Of a stretch of 64,000 nucleotides of DNA, positions 10,419 through 53,983 are shown in pieces. The DNA lies in IMG/VR virus record IMGVR_UViG_3300042922_000643, positions 62,001 to 126,000 of that record; one strand, 5' to 3'. The translations under genes and the position numbers were made by a program. The first letter of the stretch is position 1. Every line of letters starts with the position of its first letter. The notes below the pieces were generated by a model that was not told where the DNA came from, did not search any database, and saw nothing but the letters and a program-made list of their open reading frames with translations.

Positions 10419-10447
10419 ATCATAACATGTATACATTTGTAAGTAAA
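10419..10447 (-). promoter_or_regulatory. Sigma-A-like promoter of the RHH gene with an internal palindrome
   Basis: TTTACT-N17-TATGAT with extended TG; ATGTATACAT palindrome in the spacer. Confidence 0.65.
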
Positions 10448-10449
10448 GC

Positions 10450-10471
10450 AAATAAAAAAGCCCCGAAGGGC
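10450..10471 (-). terminator. Terminator ending the late/lysis transcript
   Basis: GCCC-TTCG-GGGC followed by TTTTTTATTT. Confidence 0.85.
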
Positions 10472-11329
10472 TTACTTGCCTTGAATAAATTTCTGTACCT
10501 CTTCAATCACACTCAGTCCATATGCGTAACCTTTTTCGTAAGCCTCAGCGGTTCGGTCAAAATCAAGTGACCGTATCTCAGGTATCTTTGGATAAAGACA
10601 TAGATAGTCTTTAGAGTTGGCAAGCGCGTAGTCCATGTTCTGATCAATCATGATATCCCAGGCACGACCTAATAGGCTTATGATGCCATGTGTTTCTTCA
10701 TAGCTTCCTTGAGTGCTGATATTGATTGCCACAATTTTATCAGCGCCCATAATGTTAAGTAAATTAGCAGGGAGGTTGTTAACAATACTGCCGTCACCTA
10801 AACTATGCGACCCCCAATGAAGAGGCGGGAATATACCTTGTATAGCAGAAGAAGAGTAGATCATCTTACTCAAGCTGATTCCTTCGGAGTATGTAAGTAT
10901 CTGGCTGTGTTCAGGAAGCTTCGTATTCAGGTCCATTGAAGAGAAAATGACCTGTTTCCCTGCGTTCATATCTGAAGATACTATGCTTAAGGGGACTAGA
11001 ACATCCGTAATGGGATGATCAAAGTTCTGATCTAAAAAGCTTTTTAGTCTCTTTCCCTTCATAATACCTTCAAGATTTTTAAACCGCCAAGGAATCCCCG
11101 TGATGATCTTTAAATAGTTGATATCCAGCAGCTTATTATTGATTTGCTGGATTAAGTCGAGACATTCAGCATGGGAGAAGCCCATTGCCTTCGCAGACGA
11201 CACGATAGCTCCTGCACTTGTCCCTGCATACATATCAGCCACAATACCATGCTCTTCAAAAGAATGGAGGATACCAAGGTGTATTGCTCCCCTGGCTCCC
11301 CCACCTGATAGAGCTACTCCGAGTTTCAT
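10472..11329 (-). CDS. Patatin-like phospholipase
   Basis: ALSGGGARG, GTSAG (catalytic Ser), SSAIQGIFPP, DGS (DGG-like motif). Confidence 0.93.
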   Translation of the reverse strand: MKLGVALSGGGARGAIHLGILHSFEEHGIVADMYAGTSAGAIVSSAKAMGFSHAECLDLIQQINNKLLDINYLKIITGIPWRFKNLEGIMKGKRLKSFLDQNFDHPITDVLVPLSIVSSDMNAGKQVIFSSMDLNTKLPEHSQILTYSEGISLSKMIYSSSAIQGIFPPLHWGSHSLGDGSIVNNLPANLLNIMGADKIVAINISTQGSYEETHGIISLLGRAWDIMIDQNMDYALANSKDYLCLYPKIPEIRSLDFDRTAEAYEKGYAYGLSVIEEVQKFIQGK

Positions 11330-11334
11330 CGGAA

Positions 11335-11670
11335 TCACCCCTTCTGATTATAAAGCTCCTCAAGTCTTGGACCAATGAAACTACGGATCATACTTTCTGT
11401 CATCAGTTCTTTTTCGCCTTGAGTGAGAAATTCAGCGGCATCGATTTTGGACTTCACAAACTTGACAGCATAATCTTCAAGCTTGCCATAGCCCATAGCA
11501 TCAGCCTCGCGGATCTTAATCACTTCAGTGAACACTTCGGTAAGGATAGGACGTATCTTATCCCAAGGCAGTTCAGCGCCACTCTGACGGGCTTTAACAA
11601 CAAGAATACCAGCGGATGCGGCGGCCAATGTAATCACGACAGTTAGCACAACAATAGCAGCAATACTCAT
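11335..11670 (-). CDS. Single-TM membrane protein, LL-H-type holin-like
   Basis: N-terminal hydrophobic helix then a charged helical domain; lysis-cassette context. Confidence 0.55.
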   Translation of the reverse strand: MSIAAIVVLTVVITLAAASAGILVVKARQSGAELPWDKIRPILTEVFTEVIKIREADAMGYGKLEDYAVKFVKSKIDAAEFLTQGEKELMTESMIRSFIGPRLEELYNQKG

Positions 11671-12098
11671 TACTCTTCTCCTCCATGCTCAGTAGTGTCA
11701 GCAGAGATACCTGCTGCGGTATTAACACTTTGATCAATAGCCTCATCAATATGTTTATCGATCTTCATACCCAGTTGATTTAACTTCTGGCGAATAGATG
11801 CGTAGTACTTCAATATTACTGCTACACAAGCCAAACCTTGGAGAGCAACAAAGCCACCATTTACCGCAGGAATTCCCGTAGTTGCAATTACTAATGCTTG
11901 AGTAGCAATTAGAAAGATTGTGTACTGCAAGAGAGGATTAATAAAATCAGGCAGAAGGTGAAAGTCGATCTCTTTTGATCTAGCGGCAACAATAATAGAA
12001 AGTGCTAGATTGATCAGGATAAGCAGGGAGAGGCCTGCGATCATATAGACCACAGGCGAGTCACCTAGATATTGAGAGAGTAAAGCGGAAGTATCCAT
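11670..12098 (-). CDS. Holin (holin-4-like, 3 TM)
   Basis: Three hydrophobic segments; ASIRQKLNQLG C-terminal motif; next to the endolysin. Confidence 0.7.
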   Translation of the reverse strand: MDTSALLSQYLGDSPVVYMIAGLSLLILINLALSIIVAARSKEIDFHLLPDFINPLLQYTIFLIATQALVIATTGIPAVNGGFVALQGLACVAVILKYYASIRQKLNQLGMKIDKHIDEAIDQSVNTAAGISADTTEHGGEE

Positions 12099-12110
12099 AG
12101 GAGTTCCTCC

Positions 12111-12947
12111 TTAAAATTTCTCAGGATGTTTAGACGGCGTGTAGTAAACAGCAAGACTAGGGTTCTTGACAATGATAGTAGCATCTTTAGTAGTCTTGTA
12201 AAGATTGTCAGCCCAGGCAATTGCCAGATCAGCAGTAGTGAAGCCTGCCTTCTGTACTTCTTTCTGGAAGACTCTCCATACTTGAGGAGTGGACGGAGTC
12301 GCAGGAGCATTCAGAGCAGCTAGTTCTTTTGCTACAGCATCCTTATAAGCCTGCCAAGCAAGATCCTTGGTTGTGCTAAGATACTTCTTAGCGTAACTGT
12401 TGTCTGTGAAGAATCCTGGACACAGTTTGCCAGTAATGTCATAGTGACGATACATCTGATCTACAGTCAGTCCATGTTCTTTCAGAACCATAGCAGAAAC
12501 CTTTACTGCATTGGCATAAGCCTTTTTAAAGTCGCCGTCAGAATTGACACAGATTTCAAGACCAATCGTGCAATTGTTTGGATATGTACTGCCCAGCTTT
12601 TTAAGAATTCCAGACATGTATTCATCCGCCTCTGCACCAACGTGATAGGCCATCTCTGCTTTTCCCTTTTTCCAAGGAATATTTTCAGTCAGAGTACCAT
12701 CATCTACATTTAAATGTGCAGAAGCCTTTCGAAAAGATACAGGCTTTCCTTTGGCATTGTTATATATTTCGTAAATTTTGCTGGCAATCACGCGCCACTT
12801 ACGATTGAAATAGTTACGGTTAGCAACAGCATTAGAGCCTTTGCCTTCATTAGCTGTCCAGTGAACAACGTGTCCTGTTACCTTATTCATGAGAGTTCCA
12901 GGACGGTTTGGATGCTTAACATCCAGATACATCTGTTTAGTTTCCAT
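12111..12947 (-). CDS. Endolysin, N-acetylmuramoyl-L-alanine amidase (Amidase_2)
   Basis: VVHWTAN, ASAH, AYHVG, IGLEIC, RHYDITGKLCPG; small C-terminal domain after a Pro linker. Confidence 0.93.
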   Translation of the reverse strand: METKQMYLDVKHPNRPGTLMNKVTGHVVHWTANEGKGSNAVANRNYFNRKWRVIASKIYEIYNNAKGKPVSFRKASAHLNVDDGTLTENIPWKKGKAEMAYHVGAEADEYMSGILKKLGSTYPNNCTIGLEICVNSDGDFKKAYANAVKVSAMVLKEHGLTVDQMYRHYDITGKLCPGFFTDNSYAKKYLSTTKDLAWQAYKDAVAKELAALNAPATPSTPQVWRVFQKEVQKAGFTTADLAIAWADNLYKTTKDATIIVKNPSLAVYYTPSKHPEKF

Positions 12948-13527
12948 TGTTCTTATCTCCTTTTTCTTTTTTTCTTACACCATTCAGTAGATGAATTTGG
13001 CGTAAGTGCTTAATAAGCAAACTCATGAACACACAGCATACGGCAATCTCGATGATCGTTTGCTCCAAGCGAAGAGTCATCCATGTATCCCTGTAGGACA
13101 TGTCAAAAGGGATGGCGATAAGATTTTTAACGATGATAGAACAAAAGATTGCGCGGTATACATTGAACGGCGAGTATTTAAAAATCTTTTTAAAACTCTG
13201 ATAGAAGAAGACGATGCTAATAGCAAAGACTTCTCTTACGAAGAGCATAGAATATAAATTCCAATGATAGTAATGAGTGTCTAGATTATAGTGAGTTACT
13301 AGAGACCAAATTAGTGCTAGAGGAATAGCAACTCTATATCCTCCAATCATACAGGCGAACATAGTCGCCACGATTGTAATATCAATGGCCTTACTAGGAG
13401 AAAGTGGTACATATACCATATCTGAGAACCCAGCAAGAATTGCAATTAAACTGAATAGGCCCGAGATGAGTATAGAAAGATAACTTTTACGGCTGATTTG
13501 GATCTTCGTCATTAGCAGACTCTTCAT
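12937..13527 (-). CDS. Multi-pass membrane protein resembling an ECF transporter S-component
   Basis: About 190 aa with 5-6 TM; IDITIVATMFACMIGGYRVAIPLALIWSL resembles the PanT-type S-component helix pattern. Confidence 0.55.
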   Translation of the reverse strand: MKSLLMTKIQISRKSYLSILISGLFSLIAILAGFSDMVYVPLSPSKAIDITIVATMFACMIGGYRVAIPLALIWSLVTHYNLDTHYYHWNLYSMLFVREVFAISIVFFYQSFKKIFKYSPFNVYRAIFCSIIVKNLIAIPFDMSYRDTWMTLRLEQTIIEIAVCCVFMSLLIKHLRQIHLLNGVRKKEKGDKNNGN

Positions 13528-13945
13528 CGGTAGATCCTCCTTTGTTCTTTGTCAGACTAAGGTATAGGTTCCCCAAGGTTTCAGCGAGTTTGTTATGACC
13601 AAGCTTAGCCGTATTCTTTGTTGCCGACACAATTTCAAGTCCCACCAGAGCGATGATCAAAGACAATCGTGCAGTATCAGGCAGTCCAGTCACTCCGTCA
13701 AAAGCATGAAACATGGCGATCCATAGCACATAGGTAAAAACTTTGCCCCAGAATTTCTTCATTAGGGATGGCAACTTAAACTGTCCTTCTTTTCTAGCGA
13801 CCTGTCCTTCAAAAATGAGATCAATAAACATGGCGATAAATAGATAGGAGAGCTGATGGTTGAGCGGACCAATTGCAAAGATAACTGCGCCTTTAAGAAA
13901 TAAAAGCGGCTCTTGTTCGAAGAAACTTCTGTTCAATAGTAACAC
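13487..13945 (-). CDS. Holin, phage holin family 4 (toxin secretion/lysis)
   Basis: LFIAMFIDLI...ARKEG...KVFTY...HAFD...EIVSATKNTAKLG pattern. Confidence 0.8.
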   Translation of the reverse strand: MLLLNRSFFEQEPLLFLKGAVIFAIGPLNHQLSYLFIAMFIDLIFEGQVARKEGQFKLPSLMKKFWGKVFTYVLWIAMFHAFDGVTGLPDTARLSLIIALVGLEIVSATKNTAKLGHNKLAETLGNLYLSLTKNKGGSTDEESANDEDPNQP

Positions 13946-23504: not shown

Positions 23505-23555
23505 CGTATCACCCACATTATAAAAATAGGGGACCTCCATGGGCCCCCTTGATAT

Positions 23556-25298: not shown

Positions 25299-28200
25299 CT
25301 ACAGCACCTGCCCTTCTATAATATTCCCTAGTACTTTCGTTTGTCCACTCTTATCGAATCTCATTTTCGTGTCCCACATTGCATTTAGATCTGCGGTAGA
25401 GATTAGTCTCGGAGCAATAAACAAATTCTTGCAATAGGAATCCCAGCAATCTTCATCCCACGAGTATCCACCTACTCTTACGATACCATTAAGACCAGCC
25501 ATTGTTTGCCCAGTGCAATTGGAAGTATAAATTGCTCCACTGGCTCCATAGATTTCCGCGGTCATCACATCTGTTGTGGAGTTATACTTTAAGACATACA
25601 AAGCCCAATCCTTATAATCTTGTTCAGATAGTGCAGAGCCACTACCATATTTGCTGACATAAGTCGTAGCAGTATTGCTATATCCTACAAGTTGCCAGCT
25701 AGCTACAGTTGCAGTAGCTCCCCACTTAAACCCAATACAAGCATCTGACTGACCAAGTACGTAGTAGTCTCCGACTGCAATCGGAACAAATCGGTTTCCT
25801 GTCGTCGTTGTCATACTCCAAATATTAGGCTTCGCGATTACCCCTACGGTCCAATCATTATTTGCATTTATGATGGAAGGAACTGTGTACTTTAAGATAC
25901 TATCTCCAACAGTTGTGTTTGGTGGAATCGATGGATTCTGATAAGGGAGATTTGTGGAGTTCGTCCATTGTACCCCATTAATATAGAGTTCACCAGCATT
26001 TGCAGAGTACCCCCATGAGGGTCCATCCACAAGCAGAGCTCCAGTATAAGCTTCTGATGCCTTGGATGTTCTCCAGAAGTAATGCCATTGCCCGTCAGCA
26101 ATGATAGAAGCATCTCCAGCAATCGTAGTAAAGATTGCGCGTGTCCAGTCAGAGGTGTAGAGACCAGCCGCAGTAAAAGCAGTGACTCCAGCAGCAGCAG
26201 ATGTCTTATACCATCCTGATACAGTTACATAGCTATCTGCTGTTACGGTGAAGAGTGTTCCATATGGTCCTTCCCATCCATGCCACTGGCTTGCCGAACC
26301 TGTCTTGGTGAATTTCCACGTCTTGGAATTTGGAATAGGCCCTGGCTCTGTTAGAGTGACATCAGTAATAATGCCACCATTATTCGTCCAAGGAGCTACA
26401 TCATAAAATAGATTCTTAAAAGAAGCTCCAATGAATACTCCGTTCTGATCATAGATAGTATTTGTTTCAGTGGTTGGCGGATTCAGATGGTTAATATCTA
26501 GAGAATCTACAGTAAGTGGATAGAACAAATCTCCACCTTGTAAACCCATAGGGCCTTCTACAATCCCTTTTGTGATAAGATCTCCGCTAGCCTTCAGTGA
26601 GCTCTTTGGTTTTGCAAGTGCAGAAATCTCTTCCGTATTTAGATTCCTATTGTAAACCGCTAGATTACTAATGGGTCTGTTGGCAGGAGAGCTATTTGTA
26701 CTTGTATCGTAGAACTTCATTCCGCCTACACGGGTTGTTGGCGTTGTTGCGCCCTCGCGGTTGATGAGGAATAAGAGTCTTACGTATCTTGTGCCATATC
26801 GGAACAAGCTTCCTGATCCACCGCCTACACCTGTTATAGTTCCCGTGTACTGCGTCCAGCTCGTTGGCACGGTTACGTTACCTGCGGCGATGTAGTTATA
26901 TCCGCCGCCGTCAGTAGAACAAGCCACCGCTGTTCCAACAGGAAGTGTTGTTCCCGTCCAAGCACTTGCGAGTGTGATCGTTTTTGCTGTGGTATTCAGG
27001 GTAACATAACCTACTGTTCCATCTGAGTATGTATAGTTCTGGTAGTTTCCTGTGATCCACCAAGAGAATTGCTTCGAGTAATGATAGACTCCAGCGGTTC
27101 CTGCCGCCCATCCCGTTGTGCTTGTTAGATACACTACGGTATCTCCTGGCTTCAATGCTTGAGCTAATGTGGTAAGACCCGCGTGAGTGACTCGGTTGTG
27201 CGGAATAACCGCTTTGTTCTTATCAAAGCAGATTACTCCATAGTAGAGTTTACTGGTTGCGGCCATTCCTTTGAACCATCCCGTTAGAGTATAGGGTCTA
27301 GTTGGGTCTACGGGAATATACTCATCAGAATATACCGTAGAGTCTGCACTTGTTCTAGATAAGCAACCTGCTTGCCCATCTGGACTATCTCCAGCTACAT
27401 ATACAAAGGAACTGAAGTTGGTATTATCACCTAAGTTAGCTGATCCATTCTTAATCAGGTTATTATTTACGCCATTTCCTACTCGCATATATTCAATGTT
27501 TGTGGCGTCAATCACAGGAACAGCGACCCCACCATAGCTTCCAGGCATCATAACCCCATCTATCCATAGCTCAAGACGAGTGGGCATAGAGATGACTACG
27601 AAGTGATGAACGCCATCGGTCTGAACAGGAGCAGACACTTCTTTGTAATTCGTAAGACCAGTACCTGAGCGTAGACGGAATGTGCCATCACCCAGCTGGT
27701 GAAGAGATAGAACATTCAAATCCATTGATCCATTATCGAATGAAAAGAGGGCCTGCTCAGATCCTGTAACCGTACGAGAATCTACTTCATAGTCAAGGGA
27801 TATACTAATCGGAGCCGTTGGTTTAAATGGTATCGAAGTGACACTTGCGGTAGGATATGATCGACTACCTATCACATAGGAAGTAGAGAATTGTCTCGGT
27901 TCCATTTGCGGTGCGCACAACCACATCCGCTTGCCTGACGGAATACTAATTACAAAGTCTAGTGAGTCCGTGTCATTGTTAACCTCTGTTCTTACGAAGT
28001 TAAAGACGCATCTCTTCCATCCTTCTTCAGGGTCAACTTGGATTTGGTTTGTCCACTTACCATGGTTCTCTCCAGCAGCAGCAGTAAGTCCTTGGATCTG
28101 TCCAGGAGCTTCTGTCTTCACATAAACTGAGATTGTGTAATCTGTTACGTCAGCCTGAGGAGAGTAATCACCGTAAGAGTAATACCATCCGCTACCACCA

Positions 28201-31200
28201 CTTGGTCCAGTAATACTTACAACAGGTGAGTCGATTCCGTCTGGAGGTGCAATATCATTCCATGTAATATTTAGAAAGTTATCTTTTGTCCAGCCTGTGT
28301 CAAGGTTCGTATTCGTCACGACATTTGTTGTGGCTTCTTCTACTAGCAGACCTTTACTGGATACACTCGCTCCTGATCCTAGAGTCGCAGGCGCAGACTG
28401 TCTAATCTTAAAGTTCCGTAGGTACCCCTTAAAGGCATTATATCCGCCCCAAGCTGGGACGTTTGCATAGTAGTCATTGGCAAGATTACTAACCTGAGAT
28501 ACGTTCGATGTGTATGCTCCGTCAGCTCCAATGAATAATCCCGTACTCCATCGATTTACGATATCTCTCTGACGATATGTTACCCAGTCTCCATTACCAG
28601 GAGTTGTTTCTAAACTGACGTCTGCTAAGGCTGGAGTTGTTGCACTTAAAGCTCCATTAACATAAAGTCTCAGATATTGTTTATCATACGTCAGTCGAAC
28701 AGTATTCCATGTGCCTGCGGTAACGAGCGCAGAGCTTGTTGCTGAAATACCCCATCCATTATTATGATACTCTGCTGGTTCTTTAGCCGCGGCACCGACT
28801 GTGCCTATAAGGGCTCCAGTACTTGAGAGGCGTAGATTAAAGATGTATCTTGAAGCATAATTGTATCCTGAGTAAAAGCTAGCCAATGCATAGTTACCCA
28901 GAATGTCTGCTTTAAACTCAATCTCTACATCTAAGAACTTTGTCTTATCAAAGACTAGAGCTACAGGTAGTCCTCCTGTTTGTGTTCTCAAGTAGCAAGT
29001 ATTATTACCGTTAAAATAACAACCCTCGTTAGAGAATATTGGTGCATCGACTGGTAAGAAGAATTCACCATAGTCTTTTAGATAATTCTCAGTGAGAGTA
29101 GCTGTTGTAGAAACATACCCGTCAGTAGTACCATCAAAAGGATAATAAACAACAGGAGTATTTACTTTTGGACCCCGCTCATTGACCTCCCCCGTGATAT
29201 TAAGACTATTCTTCTTTAGTCTGCCAAGGACACCAGTCACTTTGATAGTATACTCTGAACCGTACACAGTTCCTGCTCCGTTTGTAGCATAGGCTCTAAT
29301 ATAATATGTAGTTCCAGAGGCTAAGTTTTTGATGTTCGATTTAAATATTCCCGTCCCTGTACGAGCACCTAATGATGAATATGTGCCAAGGGCAATAGTC
29401 GGAGCAGTAGCAGTACCCCATACATGGCCATGCTGTGTCACGCCGCCGCCTGTTGCGGTGAGACTCCCACTAATAGATATAGTATTGCCACGGGTTACAG
29501 GAGTTGATGTTGTGACTGTAGCACTAGAGTACGAAGTCGTTGCACTAGCATTAGCTGAGTTTGGACTCTGAAGCAAAGTAGTTGTAGTAGGCAGATAGGC
29601 ATAGGCAGTATATGCAGTGTTTGGCGATAGCCCTGTCCACGCGCTTCCCGTTGTCTTGGTTTGCCCATTACATACGATCATTGATCCCGCTGTAGATGAC
29701 CACACGACAGAAGAGGAAGTGATACTTGAAGATGTTGGCGTACTTGGCGCTGCCTGAGCAGCCTTAGCTGTGGTAAAGCTCAATTCAGGTCCATAGGATG
29801 TTCCGTATTGAGTCGTTGCGTAAGACCTAAAATAGTAAGTCGTCACAGGAGAAAGCCCTGTTGCTGAACTACTATATGCGATAGGGCCCGCCATAGCCCC
29901 TAGCGATGTCTTTGTGGTTAAGGCAACGGTAGGGGCTGTAGAGGTGGACCACACATGTCCGTACTGACTGACAGTGCCTCCATCAAAAGTCGTGACTGCC
30001 CCTGTAAGGGTCGAGGTACTAGCAGTTATGCTATTAGCTACGCCTGTCGTTAGCGTTGCAAGACCACTTTGAATTGTATAATACGTATCTAGTGGGCCGT
30101 TAACATTACCCGCATTATCATAAGATCTCCACTGGAAATGATATTTGCCAAATCCGTTCGTTCTATTGAAGGTATATGTATACTGATTACTGCTCCCAGG
30201 AGTTGTTACGTTCTCGGCCGACCAAGCTCCATAGGTCGATCCATTATCCGTACTCTTTCTCCACCAAGCTGATACTCTATTAATACCAGAACCTGCATCT
30301 GTAGAGGTGGCCGTTAAAGCTGCTGTACCTGTATTAGAAGTAGGACTAGTGGTAATGACATCGTTTGGTTTAGTTAAGCTCGGTACTGTTTTATCGTGGT
30401 AACAATAAGCTCGCTGCATAGTACTAACATTTCCTGCGTAGTCATAGGCACGGAAGTCTATGCCCCAGTTGCCCTCTTGTTCTGCTGCTGGGAATGTGTA
30501 AGTCACTGTGAACTGACCTGGTGCTACAGAGCTAGCATTTTGAATCGGATAGTATGTTGCATCAGGCCGTACCATATACACACTTACATATGATATGCCA
30601 ATTGCGTCAGTAACATTCAGTGCAGCAGCGGTAAATGTACCTCCTGTACTTTTATATTGCTGTGGAGAAACAGACCCAATGACTGGAGCTGTTGTATCTA
30701 CACCAAAGTAGTTATTTGAATAGTTAACATCCCCTGTTCCTGTAGACACGGAGTTGACTTGTCCAAAGTCATCCATAACCTGCATACGAACATAATATGT
30801 ACTGCCATTGGTCAGGATACCTGAAGGTAGCGTAAAGCTTCTAGCAGAGCTATCGTATACCCAACCTGTACCATAAAGGACTGCGCTATATGCAGAGTTA
30901 GCAATCTCTAGATTATACGCTGCTTGATATCCAGCGGCATCAGGGTCGCTAAAACTCCAAGTGAATGTAGGTGTTGTTGTTGGTATCCACGTGTTATTTG
31001 CTGGATAAGTAATTGCTGGAGGACTAGGAGCTGTATTGCTTCGTAATACGATGTAGTCTAGGTCGATGGTGACACCACCAGCTTCACCGACGTCGAACCG
31101 CCAGCCTGTAATATTGCCATAGGCAGAGTTCCACCGTACATGGTCACTCATATGAACTACAGTTGTAACCCAGCCACCTGTCCCTGTTAGCCAGTCGCTA

Positions 31201-31466
31201 AAAACAACTTGTACTTCTGTTGCCGAACCATAAGTACTGTTTAGAAAGTAGATTTGGAATCGTCCAATACCGACTCCAGCAGGTGCTTTCCATCTGATTT
31301 CCATAGCCTTATATGTATTCGGATCAAATGAGCCAAGGCCATTCATATTAATATATGGATCACCATGGGCGGTGGTCAGCGTTAATACACTACCACCAAC
31401 GGAGTAGGTAAATCCATAGTAACCATAGGGCATTGTATCAAAATTCTGGCGAAACGCTTCAGCCAT
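25299..31466 (-). CDS. Large tail fibre/receptor-binding protein with Ig/FN3, LamG and CBM-like domains
   Basis: DTTAP/DKTVP Ig linkers, two GHVW...YY.R.YAT FN3-like repeats, EEATTN motif, several LamG-like segments. Confidence 0.85.
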   Translation of the reverse strand: MAEAFRQNFDTMPYGYYGFTYSVGGSVLTLTTAHGDPYINMNGLGSFDPNTYKAMEIRWKAPAGVGIGRFQIYFLNSTYGSATEVQVVFSDWLTGTGGWVTTVVHMSDHVRWNSAYGNITGWRFDVGEAGGVTIDLDYIVLRSNTAPSPPAITYPANNTWIPTTTPTFTWSFSDPDAAGYQAAYNLEIANSAYSAVLYGTGWVYDSSARSFTLPSGILTNGSTYYVRMQVMDDFGQVNSVSTGTGDVNYSNNYFGVDTTAPVIGSVSPQQYKSTGGTFTAAALNVTDAIGISYVSVYMVRPDATYYPIQNASSVAPGQFTVTYTFPAAEQEGNWGIDFRAYDYAGNVSTMQRAYCYHDKTVPSLTKPNDVITTSPTSNTGTAALTATSTDAGSGINRVSAWWRKSTDNGSTYGAWSAENVTTPGSSNQYTYTFNRTNGFGKYHFQWRSYDNAGNVNGPLDTYYTIQSGLATLTTGVANSITASTSTLTGAVTTFDGGTVSQYGHVWSTSTAPTVALTTKTSLGAMAGPIAYSSSATGLSPVTTYYFRSYATTQYGTSYGPELSFTTAKAAQAAPSTPTSSSITSSSVVWSSTAGSMIVCNGQTKTTGSAWTGLSPNTAYTAYAYLPTTTTLLQSPNSANASATTSYSSATVTTSTPVTRGNTISISGSLTATGGGVTQHGHVWGTATAPTIALGTYSSLGARTGTGIFKSNIKNLASGTTYYIRAYATNGAGTVYGSEYTIKVTGVLGRLKKNSLNITGEVNERGPKVNTPVVYYPFDGTTDGYVSTTATLTENYLKDYGEFFLPVDAPIFSNEGCYFNGNNTCYLRTQTGGLPVALVFDKTKFLDVEIEFKADILGNYALASFYSGYNYASRYIFNLRLSSTGALIGTVGAAAKEPAEYHNNGWGISATSSALVTAGTWNTVRLTYDKQYLRLYVNGALSATTPALADVSLETTPGNGDWVTYRQRDIVNRWSTGLFIGADGAYTSNVSQVSNLANDYYANVPAWGGYNAFKGYLRNFKIRQSAPATLGSGASVSSKGLLVEEATTNVVTNTNLDTGWTKDNFLNITWNDIAPPDGIDSPVVSITGPSGGSGWYYSYGDYSPQADVTDYTISVYVKTEAPGQIQGLTAAAGENHGKWTNQIQVDPEEGWKRCVFNFVRTEVNNDTDSLDFVISIPSGKRMWLCAPQMEPRQFSTSYVIGSRSYPTASVTSIPFKPTAPISISLDYEVDSRTVTGSEQALFSFDNGSMDLNVLSLHQLGDGTFRLRSGTGLTNYKEVSAPVQTDGVHHFVVISMPTRLELWIDGVMMPGSYGGVAVPVIDATNIEYMRVGNGVNNNLIKNGSANLGDNTNFSSFVYVAGDSPDGQAGCLSRTSADSTVYSDEYIPVDPTRPYTLTGWFKGMAATSKLYYGVICFDKNKAVIPHNRVTHAGLTTLAQALKPGDTVVYLTSTTGWAAGTAGVYHYSKQFSWWITGNYQNYTYSDGTVGYVTLNTTAKTITLASAWTGTTLPVGTAVACSTDGGGYNYIAAGNVTVPTSWTQYTGTITGVGGGSGSLFRYGTRYVRLLFLINREGATTPTTRVGGMKFYDTSTNSSPANRPISNLAVYNRNLNTEEISALAKPKSSLKASGDLITKGIVEGPMGLQGGDLFYPLTVDSLDINHLNPPTTETNTIYDQNGVFIGASFKNLFYDVAPWTNNGGIITDVTLTEPGPIPNSKTWKFTKTGSASQWHGWEGPYGTLFTVTADSYVTVSGWYKTSAAAGVTAFTAAGLYTSDWTRAIFTTIAGDASIIADGQWHYFWRTSKASEAYTGALLVDGPSWGYSANAGELYINGVQWTNSTNLPYQNPSIPPNTTVGDSILKYTVPSIINANNDWTVGVIAKPNIWSMTTTTGNRFVPIAVGDYYVLGQSDACIGFKWGATATVASWQLVGYSNTATTYVSKYGSGSALSEQDYKDWALYVLKYNSTTDVMTAEIYGASGAIYTSNCTGQTMAGLNGIVRVGGYSWDEDCWDSYCKNLFIAPRLISTADLNAMWDTKMRFDKSGQTKVLGNIIEGQVL

Positions 31467-40887: not shown

Positions 40888-43800
40888 TTAAGATGTGAAC
40901 TTATCATAAACGATAACCTCTATGTGCTTGATTTGTATAGCTGATCCAGCGGTATTTCTTTTCACTTGGAAGATTGTATCCCCCGTAAAACTGGATTGGA
41001 ACGGGGCACTCGTCCATGTTCTTGCACCGCCGCCAACTCCCTTACCTACATTCGGCAGATCGAAATCCGTTGGGTTGGTCAAAGTCACAGCAGAAGTTGT
41101 TGTGCCATCCTGAACGATACGAAGCGTTGATGTCGAACCTGGCTCATCGTTATACCGAACAAGGAGTACGTACCAGCGTTCACCACCAGAAGGGTGTTCT
41201 AGGAGACGGCCAGGGCCTGTCAGGAAGGTTCCATAATCTTCGATGATGGTATCAAAGGTTGTACTGCTAACTTCGATAGGAAGGTCACCAGGACCGTATA
41301 CAGGGAAACTGAACATCATACGAAGTGTATTCAAGAGCCTAAGCTCACCGTTTACACGAATGATATCTGTCTCGTCCCCTGTACCGATAGTCGTACTTCC
41401 TTGAACGGTCAGATTGCCAGAGATTGTATAGTCGCCATCCACCTGAGTACTACCTACGTAAGTAGTCGTACCTGTAACGTTCAGGTTTCCTGCTACAGAT
41501 ATGTCTCCTTCGGAGTCGATAGTGAACAAGCTTTCACCTGTACTTTTTGCAACCTGCATAAGGACCGTATTTGTCAAAGCCGCGCTTGGTTGGATCTTAA
41601 GCCCGAGTCCTGCTTTAGTCAGGGTTAGTGTATCGACTAAGGTATTCGCCGCACCAAGTCTTGCGTAGTACGTTGAGATATCTGTGATTGTAGATACTGT
41701 TTGGTTATGCGCTGTTGGTGTAAATGCAGAAGGTACACCTGTCAGATCCCCCCAAGCTACCGAAGTCCAAGATGCAGTTCCAGCAGAGGACCACTTCAAG
41801 AAATTCCCTGTTGCTCCTCCAGCGGGAATATGATTGTAACCCGCACCTGTAGGATGCACATAGGTTGCGGTAGAAGAAATTGTCCCGTCTGCTGCGACAG
41901 AGATATTCGCTCCGATCTTCACGCCACCAAGGACAGTTGCAGAAGCAATAGGAGGAGTAAACTCTGTAGGCTTATCACTTACTTCAGTCCATCCTACTGT
42001 GCTCCATACAGCGGTTCCTGCCGCAGACCATTTCAGCACATTCGTACTTGCTCCACCCGCAGGGATATGATTGCTGCCTGCTCCTGTAGGATGAGTGTAG
42101 ACAGTTATTGTAGAAGTTGTGCCTGCTCCATTCGTTAGTGTTATTACTCCATCTCCAGGAGTTGGATCAGTTACCTTGTGAGCTCCTGTTGCGATGTCTG
42201 TAAGTTTAGTACGATCCCCTGGGGCTAAGTGTATCGTTGTATCACTAGCATGAGCAGAGATATCTACGCCGTCTACAGTAAATCCAGATCCCATGATTAG
42301 GTTAGCATTGATCGTCAGATCCGCGGTGATGATGCCGCCAGCACCTACAGATAAATATTCAGGGTGCCAGTGATCCGCACGGGCCATACGTTCTAGAACG
42401 CCGCTATGAGGGAGTTCTACTTTCATAGCATCTAGAATTCCCCACCCATGAACAGTATCAAGGATTGACTTATTATCCAAGAAACTACCATCCTCATGGA
42501 AGTGGCCATGATAGTGAGTATCATAGTTCAAGTCTAGCTTGTACTCGCCAATCTTCGCATAAGGAGAGATATGGTAGTCCATAATCGCACTTGGCAGAAT
42601 CTTCGGACCACGTACTGCGCCGTTTGCCAAATGGAACGATTGGATACCTGTCTTATGTGGGAAGCTTGGGTTCCATGCTTCAATTCTTGATCCTGGGAAG
42701 CTATCTGATGTTTGAGACATACGCCAAGATGTGGATTGTTTTCCCGTCTCAAATATAGCTGAGGTAACATAGATCAAGCCTCGTTCTACTTCAGGAAGAA
42801 GAGATCCTGTTGGATTGTTCAATCCTGCTCTTACTTTGAAACGATACTTAAGTGGAACGCGGAAGTCAGGTAATTGAGTGTCGGGGTTCAGATACACTCT
42901 ATCAAACGCACCTTCTGTAGACTGTTTCCCTTTACCAATATAGTTTCTTGTTTGATCAGCAACAATCTTGTAACGAGTGAATGTAGAAGGAGAAGTATTA
43001 GTTAAGGTTTGTACTGTTGATCGTCCACTGTATTGATAGTCTTCAAAGCGGATTCTGTCGAGTGAAATCTTACCACTATTTTGCTGGATTAAGACTCGGT
43101 GTTTGCCAGGAGGCATGGACATTGTATGTCTGTGCTCAATTTTGTTTAAGTAAGTCGCTTGATAGAACAAACTGTGACTTCCGCCCATAACCGTTGGCAT
43201 TTTAACAAGCGCTTCCCCAAACTCAGGACCAATAAGATAAGTCATGTACCACCAAGATGTGTACTCAATATCGATATCAATAGAGACATACGCTTTAGGG
43301 ATATCCGTTGTTACCACTGATCTGCCATTAGAAGCCATTTGCTCGCCTTCATATTCAGAACCCGCTGGATACATGTAGTCGTACTCTACTTCCCAGTCAG
43401 CGTATGCATGACAGTGAGCAATATCCATGGTGTCTCCTTTGATCTCATTGCCATTGCCATCAAGGAGAACCGTACCTGTATCTGGATCTCTAGCTTCCCA
43501 GCCCGTTGTAGAAAATCTCATGTACCTCGTAGGTTTGGAGATGATGGAGGCATAGAGATTTGTCTTTCCATTCGGTACTTCAGGCTCAATACCAATAGCC
43601 GTGTGCGCACCAAACCAGTTGGCATTCCAGCTGGGCATATCAAGCCAAGTAAACCAAGATACGCCATCTTCAGAAGACTCAATCTTTACGTTCTTGTAAG
43701 TCTTAGTAACGAAGTCTCGTTGCTCTACTCCGCCCCAGAACGTGTAGGTATAGGTTCTGCCTAGAGGGAATTTAGTATCCCATTCCATCCACACATCACA

Positions 43801-46800
43801 GTGGCCAACCATGTAGGTTTTAACGAGGTCTATAGTAACCGTTTTAACTCCTGAGCCTGTTACTGTTACGTATCGCTTAGAGTTATTATGCGCTCCTCTA
43901 AAGATCGCTCCATCAGCATTCTTTCTAAAGTCCCAAGTGAATACGTTTTTTGGATATTTGCCGTCCACGGCTTCAGCCGCACGCTCATCTGTAGGGTCCA
44001 TATCCTGAAGAACCCATGTGCCGTTTGTAGAGATTTGAGCCACAGGTAACTCTCTGCTACGCACGGATTTGTCGGAGCTTGTAAAGCTGTAATGAGGAGC
44101 CTCATATTCTTGGTCTACTCCATCTTCAATCGGAGTAAAGACCCCTGTTGTTAGATTATCCATGACTACAAATTTAGGAACAAACTCTTCTATGATAAAT
44201 TGTGCTGAAAAGTTCTTTGAAGAAGACTCATTCATTGCAATCAGAACTGAACCATTATGGTTTTTATGGTGGGAGTTCAAAATGTATGAATACTTTGCAT
44301 CCACTCGACCTTCGGCTGGGACAACAGCCTGCTGGAATTCTACACGAGAACTCGCAGGATTAGCGAACTTATTATAGTACACTGTATACAGCTCAGGCGG
44401 ACAGATATAAGACTCTCTGTAGGAGTAGCTAACAGCATACACTTTTGTTCCCACGGGAATCGAGGTATCAAATTCGATTTTTGCGCCGTCTTCATAGTAA
44501 ATTTTACTTGGCATATTTGTGTCTTCAAATGTTACACCATTATCTTTACTGAATTGAATGACTGGCGCTGGTTTTTCAACCCACTCATATTGAGGCGTAA
44601 ACACTTTTCTGTTTGTATCAGCGGTAAGTAGCTCTTTAATAATAGGTACTAACACGCCAGTATACACTCTAAACTCTGGAGTCACAGGAGTCATCTGAGT
44701 ATAAGCAGGGTCACTAGGGTCTGCCCAGTCCATTTTCGGGAAGAAGATATGAGAGGAACTACCGATCCCTCTACTCAATTGATCTCTAGCATAAAGGTCT
44801 AGCGTATTACCATTAGAATAATTGACTACGTTATACAAGTCTTGCTGGATTTCCGCTTGCTGTGAATCCTTACCTGCAACAAGCAGTCGCGCATATCCGC
44901 CTTCATTCAGAAACGGTTCATTAACGCGGAACTCAACAAGTGCGTAGTCACGGACATTTTTCTTTTCTGCATCTTCATAGACCCAGTCTGTTCGATTAGG
45001 TGCCCAGTGTTCTGCTCCTTGATACTCTACAGAACCTTCTAGTCCTAAATAAGGGTCTCCGATGTAGTTCCCCTCGGGATAAACAAAGGACAGTGAACCT
45101 GTCCCACCATTATTTACTAAGTAGAGGTATTCCTTGCCGTCCCATCCTACATCTATCGCAAGGCCCATAACGTTCGCACCCGCATCAATGTAACCAACGA
45201 TAGTTTCTGTCGCAATATTAATACGAGCAACTCTATTTTCACCATTAATAGACACAAGGAGTTCGGTTCCTGCGGCATTCACAACCATATCCAAAGGTTT
45301 TAAACCAACCTGTATAAGCTTTCTAGGCTTTGTATCCATCATCACGGTACTCTCATCGAAGACAGCTACAGAATCAGAACCTAGGAGGGTCACGAAAATT
45401 TTACCATTGGCTACCTGTATGAACTCAGGAGAGTCTCCAACTTTAATACGCGCATGAATTTCTCCACCGTAATTAGGAGTATTACGCACAGTTGAATAGT
45501 GAGAGTGACCTCCACCCCCGTCTTCCATTCCGCCTATACTATGATCCATATGCGGAGTGATACGACCAATTGCAATGAGTTCTCCTCTATCATGGTCTGT
45601 AACATACAGCATGCTCTGATCTGTACTTACAGCGATTCCGTGAGGCGACCATTTATCTTCATCCGAAATAGCTGAACCGTATCCGCCATGATTGTGTTCT
45701 CCAGTTGGAGCGGTGGCTTCAGTTGTACTAGCTGCATCCCCACCTACCGCATAGCCTAACCCAAATCGAGTACTGAGTCCTCCGTGATAGTTATCCATCC
45801 CATGAGGGGAGATAGAAATTGACCCTACTGCTTTCCAGTACATAGTAGGGAAATCAGTCATGCTTAGAATCAGAATATCCCCTTGATCTGCTAGAGTAAC
45901 ATATACCAATTTATCATCTGTAAGGACAAAGTCATACGGAGTATTTCCTGTTACTATTTGGTGATGTACATACAGATCGGGAACTCCATCCCCCGTAATA
46001 TCATCTGACACAGGGGGTGCATCAATAACAATGAAAGAATCGGGAGCATTAACATCCGTAGGGTCGGAATTGACGACGAAGAAGTGTTTATGATCCCCAA
46101 GCTTATTTCCTGTATATTTGATGCGTCCTGGACCTTTTCCTAGGTTCAGTGTTTTACCTGTCAAGCTAAAGTTGTTTGGGTCAAGATCTACTTGCACTAA
46201 TGTATCGTTACCTTGAACAGTTACATATGCGTAGCGTCCTACATCGTCTAGCATTGTAGGTGCGCCGAGTGTCTTACCAATTCCGATAAAACTAGGCTTC
46301 TTACCAGGAATCAACAGTTTACCTGCGACGGTATTAGTGGAAAGGTCGATCTTCCAGAGTTCGTGAGCGCCTTCAGTATTCAGACCTGAACCAAGCAATG
46401 CTTCTCCATCTGGGTTCTTTTTTAGGTATCCAAAGCTAGAGGACGCCGTCATAAACATCCCGTTACCAACTAGATTATCTGATTGAATTACCCCGACGTC
46501 AAATCCATCTACACGTAGGTAGCCATCTCCAATAAGAGTTTCCCCCGCCTTACCAAATACAGAGATGATGTTCGCATCGATACCTTGGGCGCTAATATGC
46601 TGAGCAGTAATACTACCTGCCTGGATAATATCACCCGTGATTGCTCCTGCTTGAATGTTGTTTGTGGTAATTGCATTTGCAGCAATCTGAACTGAGGTAA
46701 TCGTTCCTGCTTTGATAGTAGATGCGTCGATAGAACCGATTTTAATACGAGCACTATCGATGTATCCTGAGGTAATAACCGCAGCGTCTAGCCCACCCGT

Positions 46801-49800
46801 GGAGATATTGTCAGTTGTAATTACCCCCGCTTGGATATGCTTAACGGTCAAGGTATCTGTATTGATTACACTAGAATCGAGTTTCCCTGTTTTAATAACT
46901 CCAGCATCTAATCCTGCCGTAGAGATATGAGTAGTCTGGATCGCATTTGCTGCGACTAAGTCAGAAGTGATTGCACCAGCGGCAATGAGATTGGAAGTGA
47001 TAGTACCCGCAAAGATATTCTCTGCCACAATTGAACCGACGGCAATCTTCTCAGCTGTTACAGATCTTGCTGCTAGTGCTTCAGTATCAACAGCTCCAGC
47101 TTTAATATGCACGGTTTCAATGGCATCGGCTGCAATTTTATCAGCCACGACAGCTCCAGCGTGTAATTTATCAGTCTCTATAGCTCCCGCTGCAATCTTA
47201 TCAGCTACAACAGCTCCAGCATCAAGCTTGTCTGTTTCAACCGCACCTGCTGCGATCTTGTCAGCTACTACAGAGCCTGCCTTGATATTTTCAGCTTCTA
47301 CTGCGTCTGCCTTTAATTCTCTAGTTCCGATAACATCAGCAGCAATATTCCCAGCTATAATAGCATCAGCAGCAATCTTGCCAGCAACAACAGCTCCTGC
47401 TTTAATAGTATCAGCCTCTACAGCATTAGCAGCAATCTTATCAGCAGTAATTGCGTCAGCTTCGATATGTACTGCTTGGATAGCACCAGCAAGAATTTTT
47501 TCAGACGTTACTGAGTCAGCAGTAAGTTTTGAAGCGTCGATGCTATCAGCTTTAATATTTCCTGCTTCGAGTACGCCAATCTTTGCGGCATGAATTGTAG
47601 CATGTTCTGTTGATAGATTGATCGCGCTAATAACCGCAGCTTGAATATGATCAGCACCTAATACACCGATGGCAGCCGAGTTAATGATTGCAGCACCTAC
47701 TGTAGCAATACCTGCTTTAAGGTTCACCGCATCTACTACATTTGCTGTCATACGATTAGCATCAATATTTCCAGCCGTGATCTTTTCTGCACTCAGATTA
47801 CCGATTTTTGCTTCTCCGATAACTGCATTTCCTGCATATAGGTTGATAGCATCGATGACGCCAGCTGTGATCTTATCCGCTGTGAGTTCGCCAATCCGAG
47901 CACTATCAATAAGTGCTTGTTCAGTGCTGATATTAATCGCGTGAATAACGATAGCTTCAATACTCCGAGCTTCTAGTTCTCCAATTTTTGCTCCGTTAAT
48001 TTTAGCAGTATCTGCGTTCAAGTTGATCGCGTCGATAACAGCAGCTACGATATGGTTCGCTGTAAGCTCTCCAATAGTGGCCACATTAATTCTCGCGCTA
48101 TTAACATCCATTTGATCGGCATAGATATTAATTGCTGTAACGATATTGGCCCGCATTCTTTCTGCGGAAATATCACTTGCAGAAATATTGATTGCTTCAA
48201 CTACAGTTGCTTTTAACTTTTCAGCCGTAATATTTTCGGAGGAAATATTGATTGCTTCAATAACAGCAGCTTTAATATGGTCCGCAGTTAAGGTGCCAAT
48301 CACAGCGTTACTGATCTGAGCATCACCTGCTTGCATAGTAGCTGCATAAATATTCAGGGCGGACACTACGGAAGCGGAGATACGGTTTGCATCCAATGTT
48401 CCTGTCTTGATATGAGACGCATCGAGATCTCCGATTACAGCACTTTCAATTACAGCTTTGCCGATATTCGCATTGATGGCCTGAATAACATTAGCCTCAA
48501 GGAACTCACTATCAATGCCTCCGTCTCCATCCAGTAAGCCACTGATACGGCTTACACTAAAAGTATATTCAGCGGGAGCATTATTAATAGAAGTAACTAG
48601 ACGGCTCCCATCATAACTTGCGATTTTGATGTCTTCAATAGAGGCATTCATTAATGCAGCACCATCAATAGAGTTTCCGATAAAGCGAATTAGATTCGAT
48701 GGGATACTTGCGCCTTCGACAATAAAACTCTCATTTGACGCATTAACAGTGATTTTCCCGAACACTGTTTCTCTCGAATAAAATGGACTAGCAACTTTAA
48801 TGAGAGGGTTCTTACTATACCAGTTACCCGTAATTGCTGGAGGATAGTACAAGTTAACTTCATTACTCACAGCACCATAGTTTTCATTTGTTACACAAAG
48901 TGCATCCAAGCTAAATAACAAGGCAACTGTGTGTACATATTCAAACAAAGTCGTAGCCTGAGTCGTAGGAAGTGTATCACTAAGGAACGAAGATCCAAAA
49001 ATTTGAATTCCCAAGGAAGTTCTGTATGTATACATCTTTTCCATCTTAGTTTTGATTTCAGATAGTGGAAGGGAATGTTCTCCTATTCTACTATCTATTG
49101 CAAAAGTATCATAGAAATAGATATCTCCTTGCTGAGCCGCAGAGGGGAGCCAGTCAGGATTGTATATAGTGTCCCCAGTTTCAGAGAACAATTCATCTGG
49201 ATTTTCTGCATTCAGTATAGCTACTAGATTCTGTTCGTGAATACTATTCAGGATTTGATTTTGGAGCTCACGAGACACACCATTTTCATATCCAAAATTC
49301 CCACAGTAAATACCTGTAACACCCATAGCTTTCCATTGACCAATCATCGTTTGAATTTCAGCCAAAGTGAGTCCTAAAAATCCTGAGCTTAAGGTTCCAT
49401 AGAACTTTACAGACCGAGCTTCTCTTACTTTTTGAATAAGAGAAATCGTAGTTCCGTGCTTCGAATTGGAAATCATTTGCAAACCTTCAGCCAGAATAAC
49501 ATGGTCATATTTCAGATACTGAGTTACTGCTTCGTCGATATTCAAAGAGCCATTAATTCCGTCAACAACGCCATTATAGAAAAGAACAGGAGGTACTCGT
49601 AGCAGTCGTAATCCTTCAAGCTGGGAAATACGATCTGATACCGAAGTACTTGCTCCTTGTGGATTCAGTCCAAGGACATTCTCAATTGCTGTGATCGAGT
49701 CTTGAAGATCATTTACATCTTCAGCCATGACATAATCACCAAGAGGATCGTTTGCAGAAGTTGCATTTACTTTTGTTTCGAACAGATCAAATTGATTTGG

Positions 49801-53000: not shown

Positions 53001-53978
53001 AAGAGTGTTTTTAATAGAAGTAATGCTGCCAGTACCTTCTTGAAACTCTGTGAAGTTTGCATAAAGAGTACCGAACCCAAATACTTGGTGGCCATACTTT
53101 CTAGACCCAGAAGTGTTTGACGTAAAACGAACAACATTTGCTGAGGGATTACTGATTGTCCATCCTGTCCAAAGGTTTGTAAAATAGGAATCTGTCTTCA
53201 ATCGATTAGCAAAAGCTGATGCCGTTTCTCCATTATAGACAGTAATGTACTTGGTATTCCACTCTAAAGAAATACCAAATTGCCCCTCACGATCACTCGT
53301 ACCTACGAATGTAAGGTCCATAATCTGAGGCCTTGCAGTAATTGTGTAACTAGCTGTCGTTGCACCAGAACTAATGGTCAATGTTCCAGACGCTGTTGGG
53401 GGCGATTTGATTTCAATAAAGGACATAAACTTTTCTTTTGCTGCCCCCGCAACAGCAAGGTATTGGTCAACCTCAAAGCTGTCTATAGACGCAAGCGTTA
53501 AGTCTTTGGAACCATCCGTAATGCTCCCAGCCGTTGTTCTTACTGAACCGCTGATCTTATAATCGTCAAGATTAATAAGGTTTTTCCTCTTTACAAACTT
53601 TTGTTCAGAGGTATCAATCCTCGTGTTCATACTCTCTATGTCAGTAAGGATGTCTTGCAGTTCCGTATTGGCCGTTGTAAGACTAACGCTAAGATCATCT
53701 AGGTTAGTGTTGAGCTCTATAACGTCTGCCTCTGTAGAACTTGTTCTTGATCTCAGCTCTGTGTCATCATAGACTGTAAGATTGTAGCCATCAACAGAGA
53801 GTTTCCCATTGATGACTGACGATCCCACAACTGAACCTTTGTTGTCATACAAATACATGTCATTGTCGATAAGCTGCTTCATCGTCTCATTGAAAACATC
53901 CGCGTGGACCTTATCCGTGGTCTCGAATTTACGTAGAAGCTCATTATAAACACGCGAGTTGGTTTCATGGTTAGCCAT
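50094..53978 (-). CDS. Tailspike with two pectate-lyase-like beta-helix (depolymerase) domains
   Basis: N-terminal anchor RKFETTDKVHADVFN..KQLIDND; DETVGLQAAID...GTYR and DFNVKGDNTTDDTVTLQAALN...LYIPAGNYKIS. Confidence 0.85.
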   Translation of the reverse strand: MANHETNSRVYNELLRKFETTDKVHADVFNETMKQLIDNDMYLYDNKGSVVGSSVINGKLSVDGYNLTVYDDTELRSRTSSTEADVIELNTNLDDLSVSLTTANTELQDILTDIESMNTRIDTSEQKFVKRKNLINLDDYKISGSVRTTAGSITDGSKDLTLASIDSFEVDQYLAVAGAAKEKFMSFIEIKSPPTASGTLTISSGATTASYTITARPQIMDLTFVGTSDREGQFGISLEWNTKYITVYNGETASAFANRLKTDSYFTNLWTGWTISNPSANVVRFTSNTSGSRKYGHQVFGFGTLYANFTEFQEGTGSITSIKNTLNGGANLTGWTKYSASDTVMAYECSTPGAQTALTYDPGLTGVVLDIKTMKSGVGELVSKIIAIDTTTKVVTLEDAATITVSTAVVRHDETVGLQAAIDYAFEQGGGRIPLHEGTYRFGRIWLKDGVTLGGVDRSGTKLVSYESVWPSIKAIGEGNTYTDVRNEYIDTWGLNNLTLTSAYAGSLTALPFTRIALELFLCHTVAIVNVDIRNHYLGVSERCSWYTHFENVKVEYNFNGWELPYFVVSATPSNHYNCIIKDNAGLGIYLNTPDVFNFVGGAIERNALGGVKIVGGQTRTVTFDTVNIEGNGGIPLEIGDLEGTAPTGISFRNCSFKHWESTKQPMAIKLNRVVGFELSLPKFFNYTVAVDLSAGNSTFMITNPSYDGCTNYYKLEGDILGSTYYLSMMGDYDGIIGQTSRGWSQLLPTTKSITVTQVADFIAAGGGAAIMTYTDRGYINAVLDFNVKGDNTTDDTVTLQAALNKMAELRIPLYIPAGNYKISAGLVADTSKYTGTATDENIMIYGAGGTSTRILPTSSTAYDVLTIQNGTSGGGSGVAPSGYIKDIFIEGPTSNATGTNRGLLLRGMRQFEVHSVTVKRIPIAFDMIDNCYGTVYYNCRAQLGAIGLNLRAGVSSGSDMNFYNFWLTGNTAGIQISPDGGGWHFFGGQISGGQFRSADDDDSGAVIIGKDLITSATGTSSNIIFDGIDFEGIRHMHAFRSFGQVSMTVRNSSFLMTDTSGAGLTAAPLAIWKGTGAQQSRVIFENNGIKGVWKSAKAIDIAGNGSLMEIHERATMYESNVKFNNVAWTSAPMLVQSKSSLGHAHWRDSWVSKYLVGGTIYRETSGKQEQSIDWGTTWTGIITGSFAADSVKIGGGTVSTGVFSTLLASYNLTTAIPTLSIPAHSTTTIDLTMANAALNDDVRVVMYNLPEGLMWNPYITEAGKIKLRIGNSTAADITIPATHNIRITVEKFS

Positions 53979-53983
53979 TCATT

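Follow-up and report, generated by a model that had tools for sequence, protein, structure and literature searches.

Why would a large phage place a gene for a patatin-like lipid acyl hydrolase at the end of its lysis genes, and what could such an enzyme do there? We addressed this question for a stretch of 64,000 nucleotides (hereafter the window) that spans bases 62001-126000 of the 251,543-bp virus record IMGVR_UViG_3300042922_000643, which is rated complete and originates from soil metagenomes, the region being present in three soil-metagenome DNA runs, with no RNA run among those listed. Six consecutive open reading frames (ORFs) on the minus strand, between positions 10472 and 13945, form a lysis cassette whose last gene encodes the patatin. 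A first reading based on the sequence alone (the sequence-only reading) had proposed that this phospholipase is a co-transcribed lysis accessory that attacks the membrane. The reading we favour, tentatively and with somewhat less than even confidence, is that the patatin is an optional accessory enzyme of lysis or release that degrades membrane; we infer its late co-transcription with the lysis genes, its substrate, and any effect on lysis.

The patatin gene closes a tightly packed cassette

All six cassette ORFs were verified at the coordinates first assigned to them. In order of transcription, they encode a 152-aa holin of the Phage_holin_4_1 family (13487-13945, GTG start), a 196-aa membrane protein with about five transmembrane segments (12937-13527), the endolysin, a 278-aa N-acetylmuramoyl-L-alanine amidase (Amidase_2; 12111-12947), a 142-aa membrane protein with three transmembrane segments (11670-12098), a 111-aa orphan protein with an N-terminal transmembrane helix (11335-11670), and the patatin (10472-11329). 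Re-reading the spacing from the sequence confirmed that neighboring genes overlap or lie no more than 12 nt apart: the overlaps amount to 41 nt between the 152-aa holin and 196-aa protein genes, 11 nt between the 196-aa protein and amidase genes, and 1 nt (TAATG) between the 142-aa and 111-aa protein genes, and a 12-nt gap separates the amidase gene from that of the 142-aa protein. Depending on the start codon, the patatin gene either overlaps the 111-aa gene (GTGA) or follows it after 5 nt. A start at GTG 11338 would yield 288 aa and one at ATG 11329 yields 285 aa; because 11 of 11 homologs begin with MKLG at the ATG equivalent to 11329, and because a GGTGAT Shine-Dalgarno sequence lies 4 nt upstream of it, this ATG is the most likely start.

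The cassette comes after a long run of virion genes, the last of which (15217-13967, matching PHROG 19670) is separated from the holin gene by 21 nt, and from 23146 down to 10472 no intergenic gap is larger than this. Further upstream, a strong terminator-like hairpin on the minus strand (23528-23549; 8 pairs, 6 of them G-C, followed by ATTTTTAT) is the probable end of the preceding unit and the likely upstream border of the patatin-terminated operon; it sits at the 5' edge of a 126-aa ORF. Since the genes between about 23.5 kb and 10.46 kb are nowhere more than 21 nt apart, the cassette would form the last part of a late operon spanning about 13 kb. At the other end, an intrinsic terminator on the same strand, consisting of a hairpin and T-run (10458-10473; AAGCCC-TTCG-GGGCTT followed by T5ATTT), lies over the patatin stop codon, and its predicted stability (-17.4 kcal/mol, z -4.6, with 0 of 200 shuffles as stable) agrees with the strong terminator noticed earlier.

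No promoter-like site was seen in the sequence immediately upstream of the patatin gene. The next unit, which encodes an RHH repressor and a Rad52-like recombinase and lies outside the cassette, has a sigma-A-like promoter motif that sets the boundary (10419-10447, minus strand; TTTACT, 17 nt, TG-n-TATGAT, in letters TTTACT, 17 nt, TGTTATGAT). This motif is kept in five related loci (L002, L004, L005, L007, and L032; see below), and no second copy was found in the 251.5-kb genome, i.e., there is no reusable promoter family. Its spacer is palindrome-like (ACAAATGTATACATGT), and for this reason is probably the operator of the RHH repressor.

The sequence-only reading had the patatin co-transcribed with the lysis genes, and our analysis upholds this: coupling to the cassette, the lack of any gap above 21 nt, the lack of an own promoter site, and the last-gene position in 13 relatives make it well supported that patatin and lysis genes share one late transcription unit and would be co-expressed. 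Translational coupling of the patatin to the gene directly upstream is likewise supported by the gene arrangement.

A predicted soluble lipid acyl hydrolase with intact catalytic motifs

The patatin gene is present as a single copy in the phage genome, and its product matches PF01734 with 97.4 bits against a cut-off of 27.7 (98.5 bits in a whole-genome search). In the numbering of the 288-aa form, the Gly-rich loop GGGARG (residues 12-17, G12-G13-G14-x-x-G17), the nucleophile elbow GTSAG (G39-T-S41-A-G43), and the catalytic Asp motif D182-G183 (DGS, 182-184) are each invariant in 12 sequences, so that the catalytic Ser/Asp pair is intact, as first described. A structural model of the protein (pLDDT 80.8, pTM 0.83) retrieved PlpD in Foldseek (5fya; E 2e-17, TM-scores 0.72/0.81, overall range to 5fya 0.72-0.84), along with patatin 4pka, CapE, and CapV. 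PlpD was also the best sequence match (E 1.5e-36), and Bacillus subtilis YlbK aligned with TM-scores of 0.78/0.86 at 26% identity. The window patatin resembles the PlpD passenger domain (5fya/5fqu), YlbK, and Escherichia coli RssA in being of the same size and having no extra regulatory domain, but differs from them in being phage-borne and located inside a lysis operon. Hydropathy analysis gave no signal peptide, export signal, or hydrophobic stretch. Sequence and model together mark the protein as a generic stand-alone patatin of the NTE/RssA/YlbK/PlpD type, a predicted lipid acyl hydrolase that would be soluble and cytoplasmic.

More specific assignments were rejected. The RssA equivalog model (NF007623) reached 69.1 bits against a cut-off of 272, and the CBASS lipase model (NF041079) 40.8 bits against a cut-off of 200, with holins, an amidase, and RHH as neighbors and no cyclase/CD-NTase gene nearby; other defense-effector phospholipases were ruled out as well, since PADLOC effector models reach only 45 bits. 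CBASS CapV and CapE have the same fold as the window patatin, but are host-encoded and nucleotide-activated. CapV and CapE kill cells by membrane degradation, and a patatin can thus do so from the cytoplasm.

The gene appears to be maintained by selection: all 13 of 13 patatin ORFs read intact, and the ratio of nonsynonymous to synonymous substitution rates (dN/dS), obtained from the one pair unsaturated at synonymous sites, was about 0.10, i.e., purifying.

Linkage of patatin and lysis genes across a jumbo phage family

A scan for related loci found nothing with the single protein and succeeded with the alignment. We examined 13 further distinct metagenomic relatives that carry the patatin in the cassette (L002/3, L004, L005, L006, L007, L009/10, L011-13, L030, L031, L033, L034, L035, and L052). 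INPHARED patatin matches labeled "Bacteriophage sp." (L027, MT835490.1; L028, MT835815.1) look bacterial chromosomal, as they carry PolA, CoaE, RF-1, Sua5, and amylase genes, and were dropped as evidence.

The patatins of these relatives are 37-59% identical to that of the window, and the gene is the last of the cassette in the window and in 13 of 13 relatives. In each of the seven relatives checked (L002, L004, L005, L006, L007, L009, and L012), a hairpin and T-run either lies over the patatin stop codon or comes after it. Around this fixed point, the cassette is reshuffled. The endolysin slot may hold an Amidase_2, an Amidase_3 with PG_binding_1, or an Amidase_2 or Amidase_3 plus a Glucosaminidase, and the patatin gene is preceded by the 142-aa and 111-aa genes together, by a single one of them, or by the gene of an SPP1-type holin (Holin_SPP1, 98 bits). 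In L010, L012, and L013 the downstream Rad52 replication module is inverted, and the link between patatin and cassette is kept. The endolysin is exchanged at a fixed position between homologous flanking holin and membrane protein genes (window 12111-12947; L004:4159-5202; L006:3766-5616; L030:2740-4458; L032:2658-4517).

The trees of the patatin and of the virion protein broadly agree, and the patatin gene has the same GC content as the phage. Both features suggest that the gene has long been inherited vertically in this phage lineage, and on both grounds a recent horizontal gain was rejected. A survey of gene neighborhoods had been suggested as a check on the initial proposal: linkage to lysis genes is kept in 14 of 14 jumbo-family loci carrying the patatin, and neither an own early promoter nor unlinked copies, either of which would have spoken against the proposal, occur within this phage family.

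A putative accessory step in lysis or release

Observations that argue for an accessory role in lysis include the tight coupling with a terminator directly after the gene, the persistence of the patatin-cassette linkage through endolysin swaps and module inversion, the signs of long vertical inheritance, the invariant catalytic residues, and the dN/dS of 0.10. Under this reading, one late mRNA would encode the patatin along with two holin systems and the amidase, and the enzyme, synthesized in the cytoplasm, would deacylate glycerolipids of the host membrane either from the cytoplasmic face or after the holins have breached the membrane. Deacylation could then make lysis faster or more complete and free the progeny from membrane remnants, a role that by analogy might be akin to that of LysB, which acts as a "finishing" enzyme of mycobacteriophage lysis.

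By fold, LysB belongs to the cutinase-like alpha/beta hydrolases, whereas the phage patatin matched only the Patatin family. The likeness is one of role only, since LysB cuts a mycolic-acid outer layer that Bacillus-type hosts lack. Both LysB, a mycolyl-arabinogalactan esterase found in LysA/holin/LysB cassettes (PMC5707550, PMC6116114), and, by prediction, the patatin are serine-nucleophile lipid-ester hydrolases whose genes adjoin those of a holin and an endolysin. LysB is a lipolytic lysis accessory: without it, lysis occurs and particles stay trapped (PMC5707550), and this accessory status, with poorer release in its absence, matches the optional presence of the patatin.

A second precedent is phage WO of Wolbachia, for which a putative patatin-based lytic cassette with a holin-like protein carrying one N-terminal transmembrane segment has been put forward, as a proposal only (PMC9203015, PMC3173496). 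Judged by the published description of WO, the two systems share a patatin gene adjoining that of a small single-transmembrane protein, beside the virion module. In WO, however, the proposal has the patatin take the place of an endolysin that is missing, the cassette includes an ankyrin protein, and the host is a diderm endosymbiont, whereas the window cassette has a canonical Amidase_2 endolysin and a Pfam-level holin and has no ankyrin. No Wolbachia phage was among the tblastn matches. Our literature searches turned up no earlier description of a patatin gene within a canonical holin-endolysin cassette in phages of Gram-positive bacteria.

If the patatin does shape lysis, Gram-positive phages would not in every case rely on two components to lyse their hosts, and a lipase could serve to adjust when cells burst or how virions are released. 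The patatin-lysis idea proposed for phage WO would also gain a testable system, since there are cultured Bacillus phages that have this cassette but lack the patatin and so provide natural controls. A bolder version, which we regard as speculative and improbable, is that some Gram-positive phages degrade the cytoplasmic membrane enzymatically as a separate, timed step of lysis, in which the patatin turns holin lesions into irreversible bilayer loss, or helps to trigger lysis through collapse of the membrane potential, and is gated or localized by the small membrane proteins encoded upstream. If true, such enzymes would constitute a fourth class of lysis proteins beside holins, endolysins, and outer-membrane disruptors.

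Patatin-less relatives and a sister clade weigh against a lysis role

Several lines of evidence nevertheless weigh against a function in lysis. In a monoderm host, there is no outer membrane to call for a third lysis step, and this phage most likely infects a single-membraned soil bacterium of the Bacillales, because its virion relatives are Bacillus jumbo phages (the 416-aa virion protein encoded next to the cassette is 49-54% identical to those of vB_BauM_KLEB27-3, vB_BceM_WH1, and Edson, with genomes of 216-234 kb) and the closest named cellular homologs of its amidase are from Brevibacillus. The position of the patatin, at an operon end and a module junction, is a typical insertion site for accessory genes. 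Moreover, the patatin is absent from all three cultured relatives although the cassette is present: like the window, KLEB27-3 (OM634661), WH1 (LC597490), and Edson (PV796108) have a holin_4_1, a membrane protein of about 200 aa, an endolysin, a small holin, and a terminator, and KLEB27-3 continues with RHH and Rad52 as the window does, but they have neither the patatin nor the 142-aa/111-aa pair, and a short SPP1-type or annotated holin stands in their place. All three nevertheless lyse Bacillus.

The metagenomic locus L032 goes further, in that the genes of the 142-aa and 111-aa proteins are retained along with terminator and RHH promoter, and exactly the patatin is absent. Here (L032:4539-5480), terminator and RHH promoter follow directly after the 111-aa gene, in a 120-nt gap without any patatin remnant; an equivalent hairpin and T-run also follows the last cassette gene of WH1, which likewise has no patatin. 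In the virion-protein tree, L032 and KLEB27-3 nest among patatin-bearing phages (99/97 support), so that at least two gains or losses of the patatin are needed. From this distribution across genomes, the patatin is optional and dispensable for the phage, and L032 represents a natural patatin-less variant suited as a control.

In the sister clade of these patatins, the gene is unlinked to that of the amidase. Phage patatins form one clade (100/100), in which the sister branch (L014/L016 and L015; 29-37% identity) derives from contigs of 126-158 kb, and there the patatin gene lies 25-31 kb from the only amidase found, among genes for ribonucleotide reductase, thioredoxin, ERF, and RusA. In L014 and in L063/L064, the latter found through an exhaustive patatin search, the patatin and a small upstream ORF are under their own sigma-A-like promoter (TTGACT-17-TATAAT), which suggests early-type expression and hence an enzyme that is not acutely membrane-lytic. 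Nor would a lipolytic step be a lysis route not yet described, as the sequence-only reading had thought possible, since a patatin cassette has been proposed for phage WO (PMC9203015) and LysB is an established lipolytic accessory (PMC5707550).

The gene order in the sister loci (L014:5700-6880; L063:1960-3110; L064) is ribonucleotide reductase, homing endonuclease or thioredoxin, small ORF, patatin, and ERF recombinase, and the ERF gene too has a consensus TTGACT-17-TATAAT promoter. In both phage families, the patatin gene is immediately upstream of that of a single-strand-annealing recombinase (Rad52-like or ERF).

Alternative roles for the patatin

These observations lend themselves to a different explanation, possible though in our view rather unlikely, in which the patatin is accessory cargo with an intracellular role unrelated to lysis, such as remodeling or scavenging of host lipids, detoxification of lysolipids, modification of a lipid-anchored receptor (superinfection exclusion), or counter-defense, and stands at the operon end only because the junction of lysis and replication modules tolerates insertions. 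The stand-alone, separately promoted patatins among DNA-metabolism genes in two other sets of large-phage contigs, far from the amidase, fit this explanation, as does the absence of the gene from the cultured relatives and L032. The closest structural relatives, YlbK and RssA, are housekeeping-type NTE-family proteins, and the exhaustive search yielded three representatives above 330 bits followed by a continuum of 674 similar patatins at E <= 1e-30, both of which speak for this explanation as well. Within the jumbo family, however, the patatin is never found outside the lysis cassette across the 14 loci, even where the neighboring module is inverted, and translational coupling ties it to holin-like genes, ahead of the terminator of the operon; late expression would also be a poor fit to a takeover or remodeling role. 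Should there be no role in lysis, the lineage would still mark a phage-specific patatin family in at least two kinds of large phage.

An improbable alternative places the activity after lysis: the enzyme, freed together with the progeny, would destroy membrane debris, vesicles, or lipid-anchored receptors (e.g., a lipoteichoic acid anchor) and so spare progeny from being lost on remnants or decoys, i.e., act in a receptor-destroying role. With a late operon position and no export signal, the patatin would be released only at lysis, Ms6 particles are trapped in debris without LysB (PMC5707550), and a yield-improving factor would be expected to be optional; the sister clade, with its early-type promoter, does not fit this picture. 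Very unlikely, finally, is a dedicated module of membrane anchor or regulator (the 111-aa protein) and lipase, as proposed for the phage WO pair: most relatives have the two genes side by side and coupled, WO pairs its patatin with a small protein bearing an N-terminal transmembrane segment (PMC9203015), and the L014 patatin is preceded by a coupled 62-aa gene with two transmembrane segments, but L032 has the 111-aa gene without a patatin, L002, L009, and L012 have the patatin without the 111-aa gene, and the small ORF upstream of the L063 patatin is soluble.

A lysogenic-conversion gene was rejected as unlikely, as the patatin has no signal peptide and no integrase or resolvase was found in the phage genome. 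The relevant comparison is pla2 of Staphylococcus sciuri phage phi575, which encodes a secreted phospholipase A2 with a signal peptide of about 30 aa and is a conversion gene placed after the lytic module of a temperate phage (PMC5390265); streptococcal Sla, as cited in that paper, is a prophage-borne phospholipase of the same sort. In pla2 as in the window, the phospholipase gene directly follows lysis genes, but the window patatin differs in its translational coupling as well as in the absence of a signal peptide and of integrase or resolvase genes.

Other components of the lysis cassette

The 152-aa holin matches PF05105 with 36.2 bits (cut-off 22.2) over 104 of 116 profile positions as well as the holin family PHROG 199, has hydrophobic stretches, and has homologs of 47-64% identity in all relatives and in KLEB27-3 (gp060). 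The amidase matches PF01510 (57.1 bits) and eleven PHROG endolysin/amidase families, and shows no signal peptide or transmembrane segment (maximum hydropathy 0.55).

The 142-aa protein had been described as a second holin-4. It falls far short of the PF05105 cut-off (15.7 bits vs. 22.2, E 0.017), its match to NCBIfam holin_1 (E 0.0068) is likewise far below threshold, PF05105 matches only one of eight members of its family, and hhalign of this family against that of the first holin gave 8%. Its neighbors in the Atlas and by fold do fit PF05105 (89 of 100 language-model neighbors, score 0.93, TM-score 0.60), and may indicate a distant kinship: from sequence and model neighbors, it is a probable divergent holin, weakly similar to Phage_holin_4_1. 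The family is present in eight related loci (L002, L004, L005, L007, L030, L031, L032, and L035).

For the 111-aa protein, the initial description as LL-H-like finds no support in the sequence, as 0 of 28 members of its own family match Holin LL-H (PF09682) at E <= 1; the only lead is an Atlas score of 0.85, and the common architecture is limited to an N-terminal transmembrane segment. The protein belongs to an orphan family of 51 members and had no match in Pfam, PHROG, NCBIfam, or PADLOC and no significant fold match. Its model is all-helical (pLDDT 91), with a transmembrane helix at about residues 3-30 followed by a conserved helical domain of about 80 aa that includes an invariant PW-K-IRP-L motif; the K/R residues after the transmembrane segment suggest that this domain is cytoplasmic. 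The soluble 49-aa ORF upstream of the L063 patatin (L063:2038-2187) begins with MRPILTDE, reminiscent of the invariant IRPILTE of the 111-aa protein. Kinship through this RPILT motif was rejected as not significant (hhalign 7.5% over 11 columns), and the resemblance may be due to chance.

The 196-aa protein of the window had no Pfam or PHROG match, and its earlier description as S-component-like is supported at the level of fold (ECF S-component/5TMR-LYT-like): its Atlas features score 0.91 with ECF families among the neighbors, structural comparison gave TM-scores of 0.65-0.70, and PF12822 matches its L033 homolog and, faintly, its L030 homolog. Every relative has this gene together with that of the holin_4_1, the cultured Bacillus phages (KLEB27-3 gp061, Edson 0620) among them. 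A protein of transporter-like fold is a constant part of this lysis cassette, and might act as an antiholin or as a partner of the holin. Upstream on the minus strand, the virion module includes very large ORFs (2055, 2975, 1294, and 1526 aa, at 25299-31466, 40888-49815, and 50094-58564).

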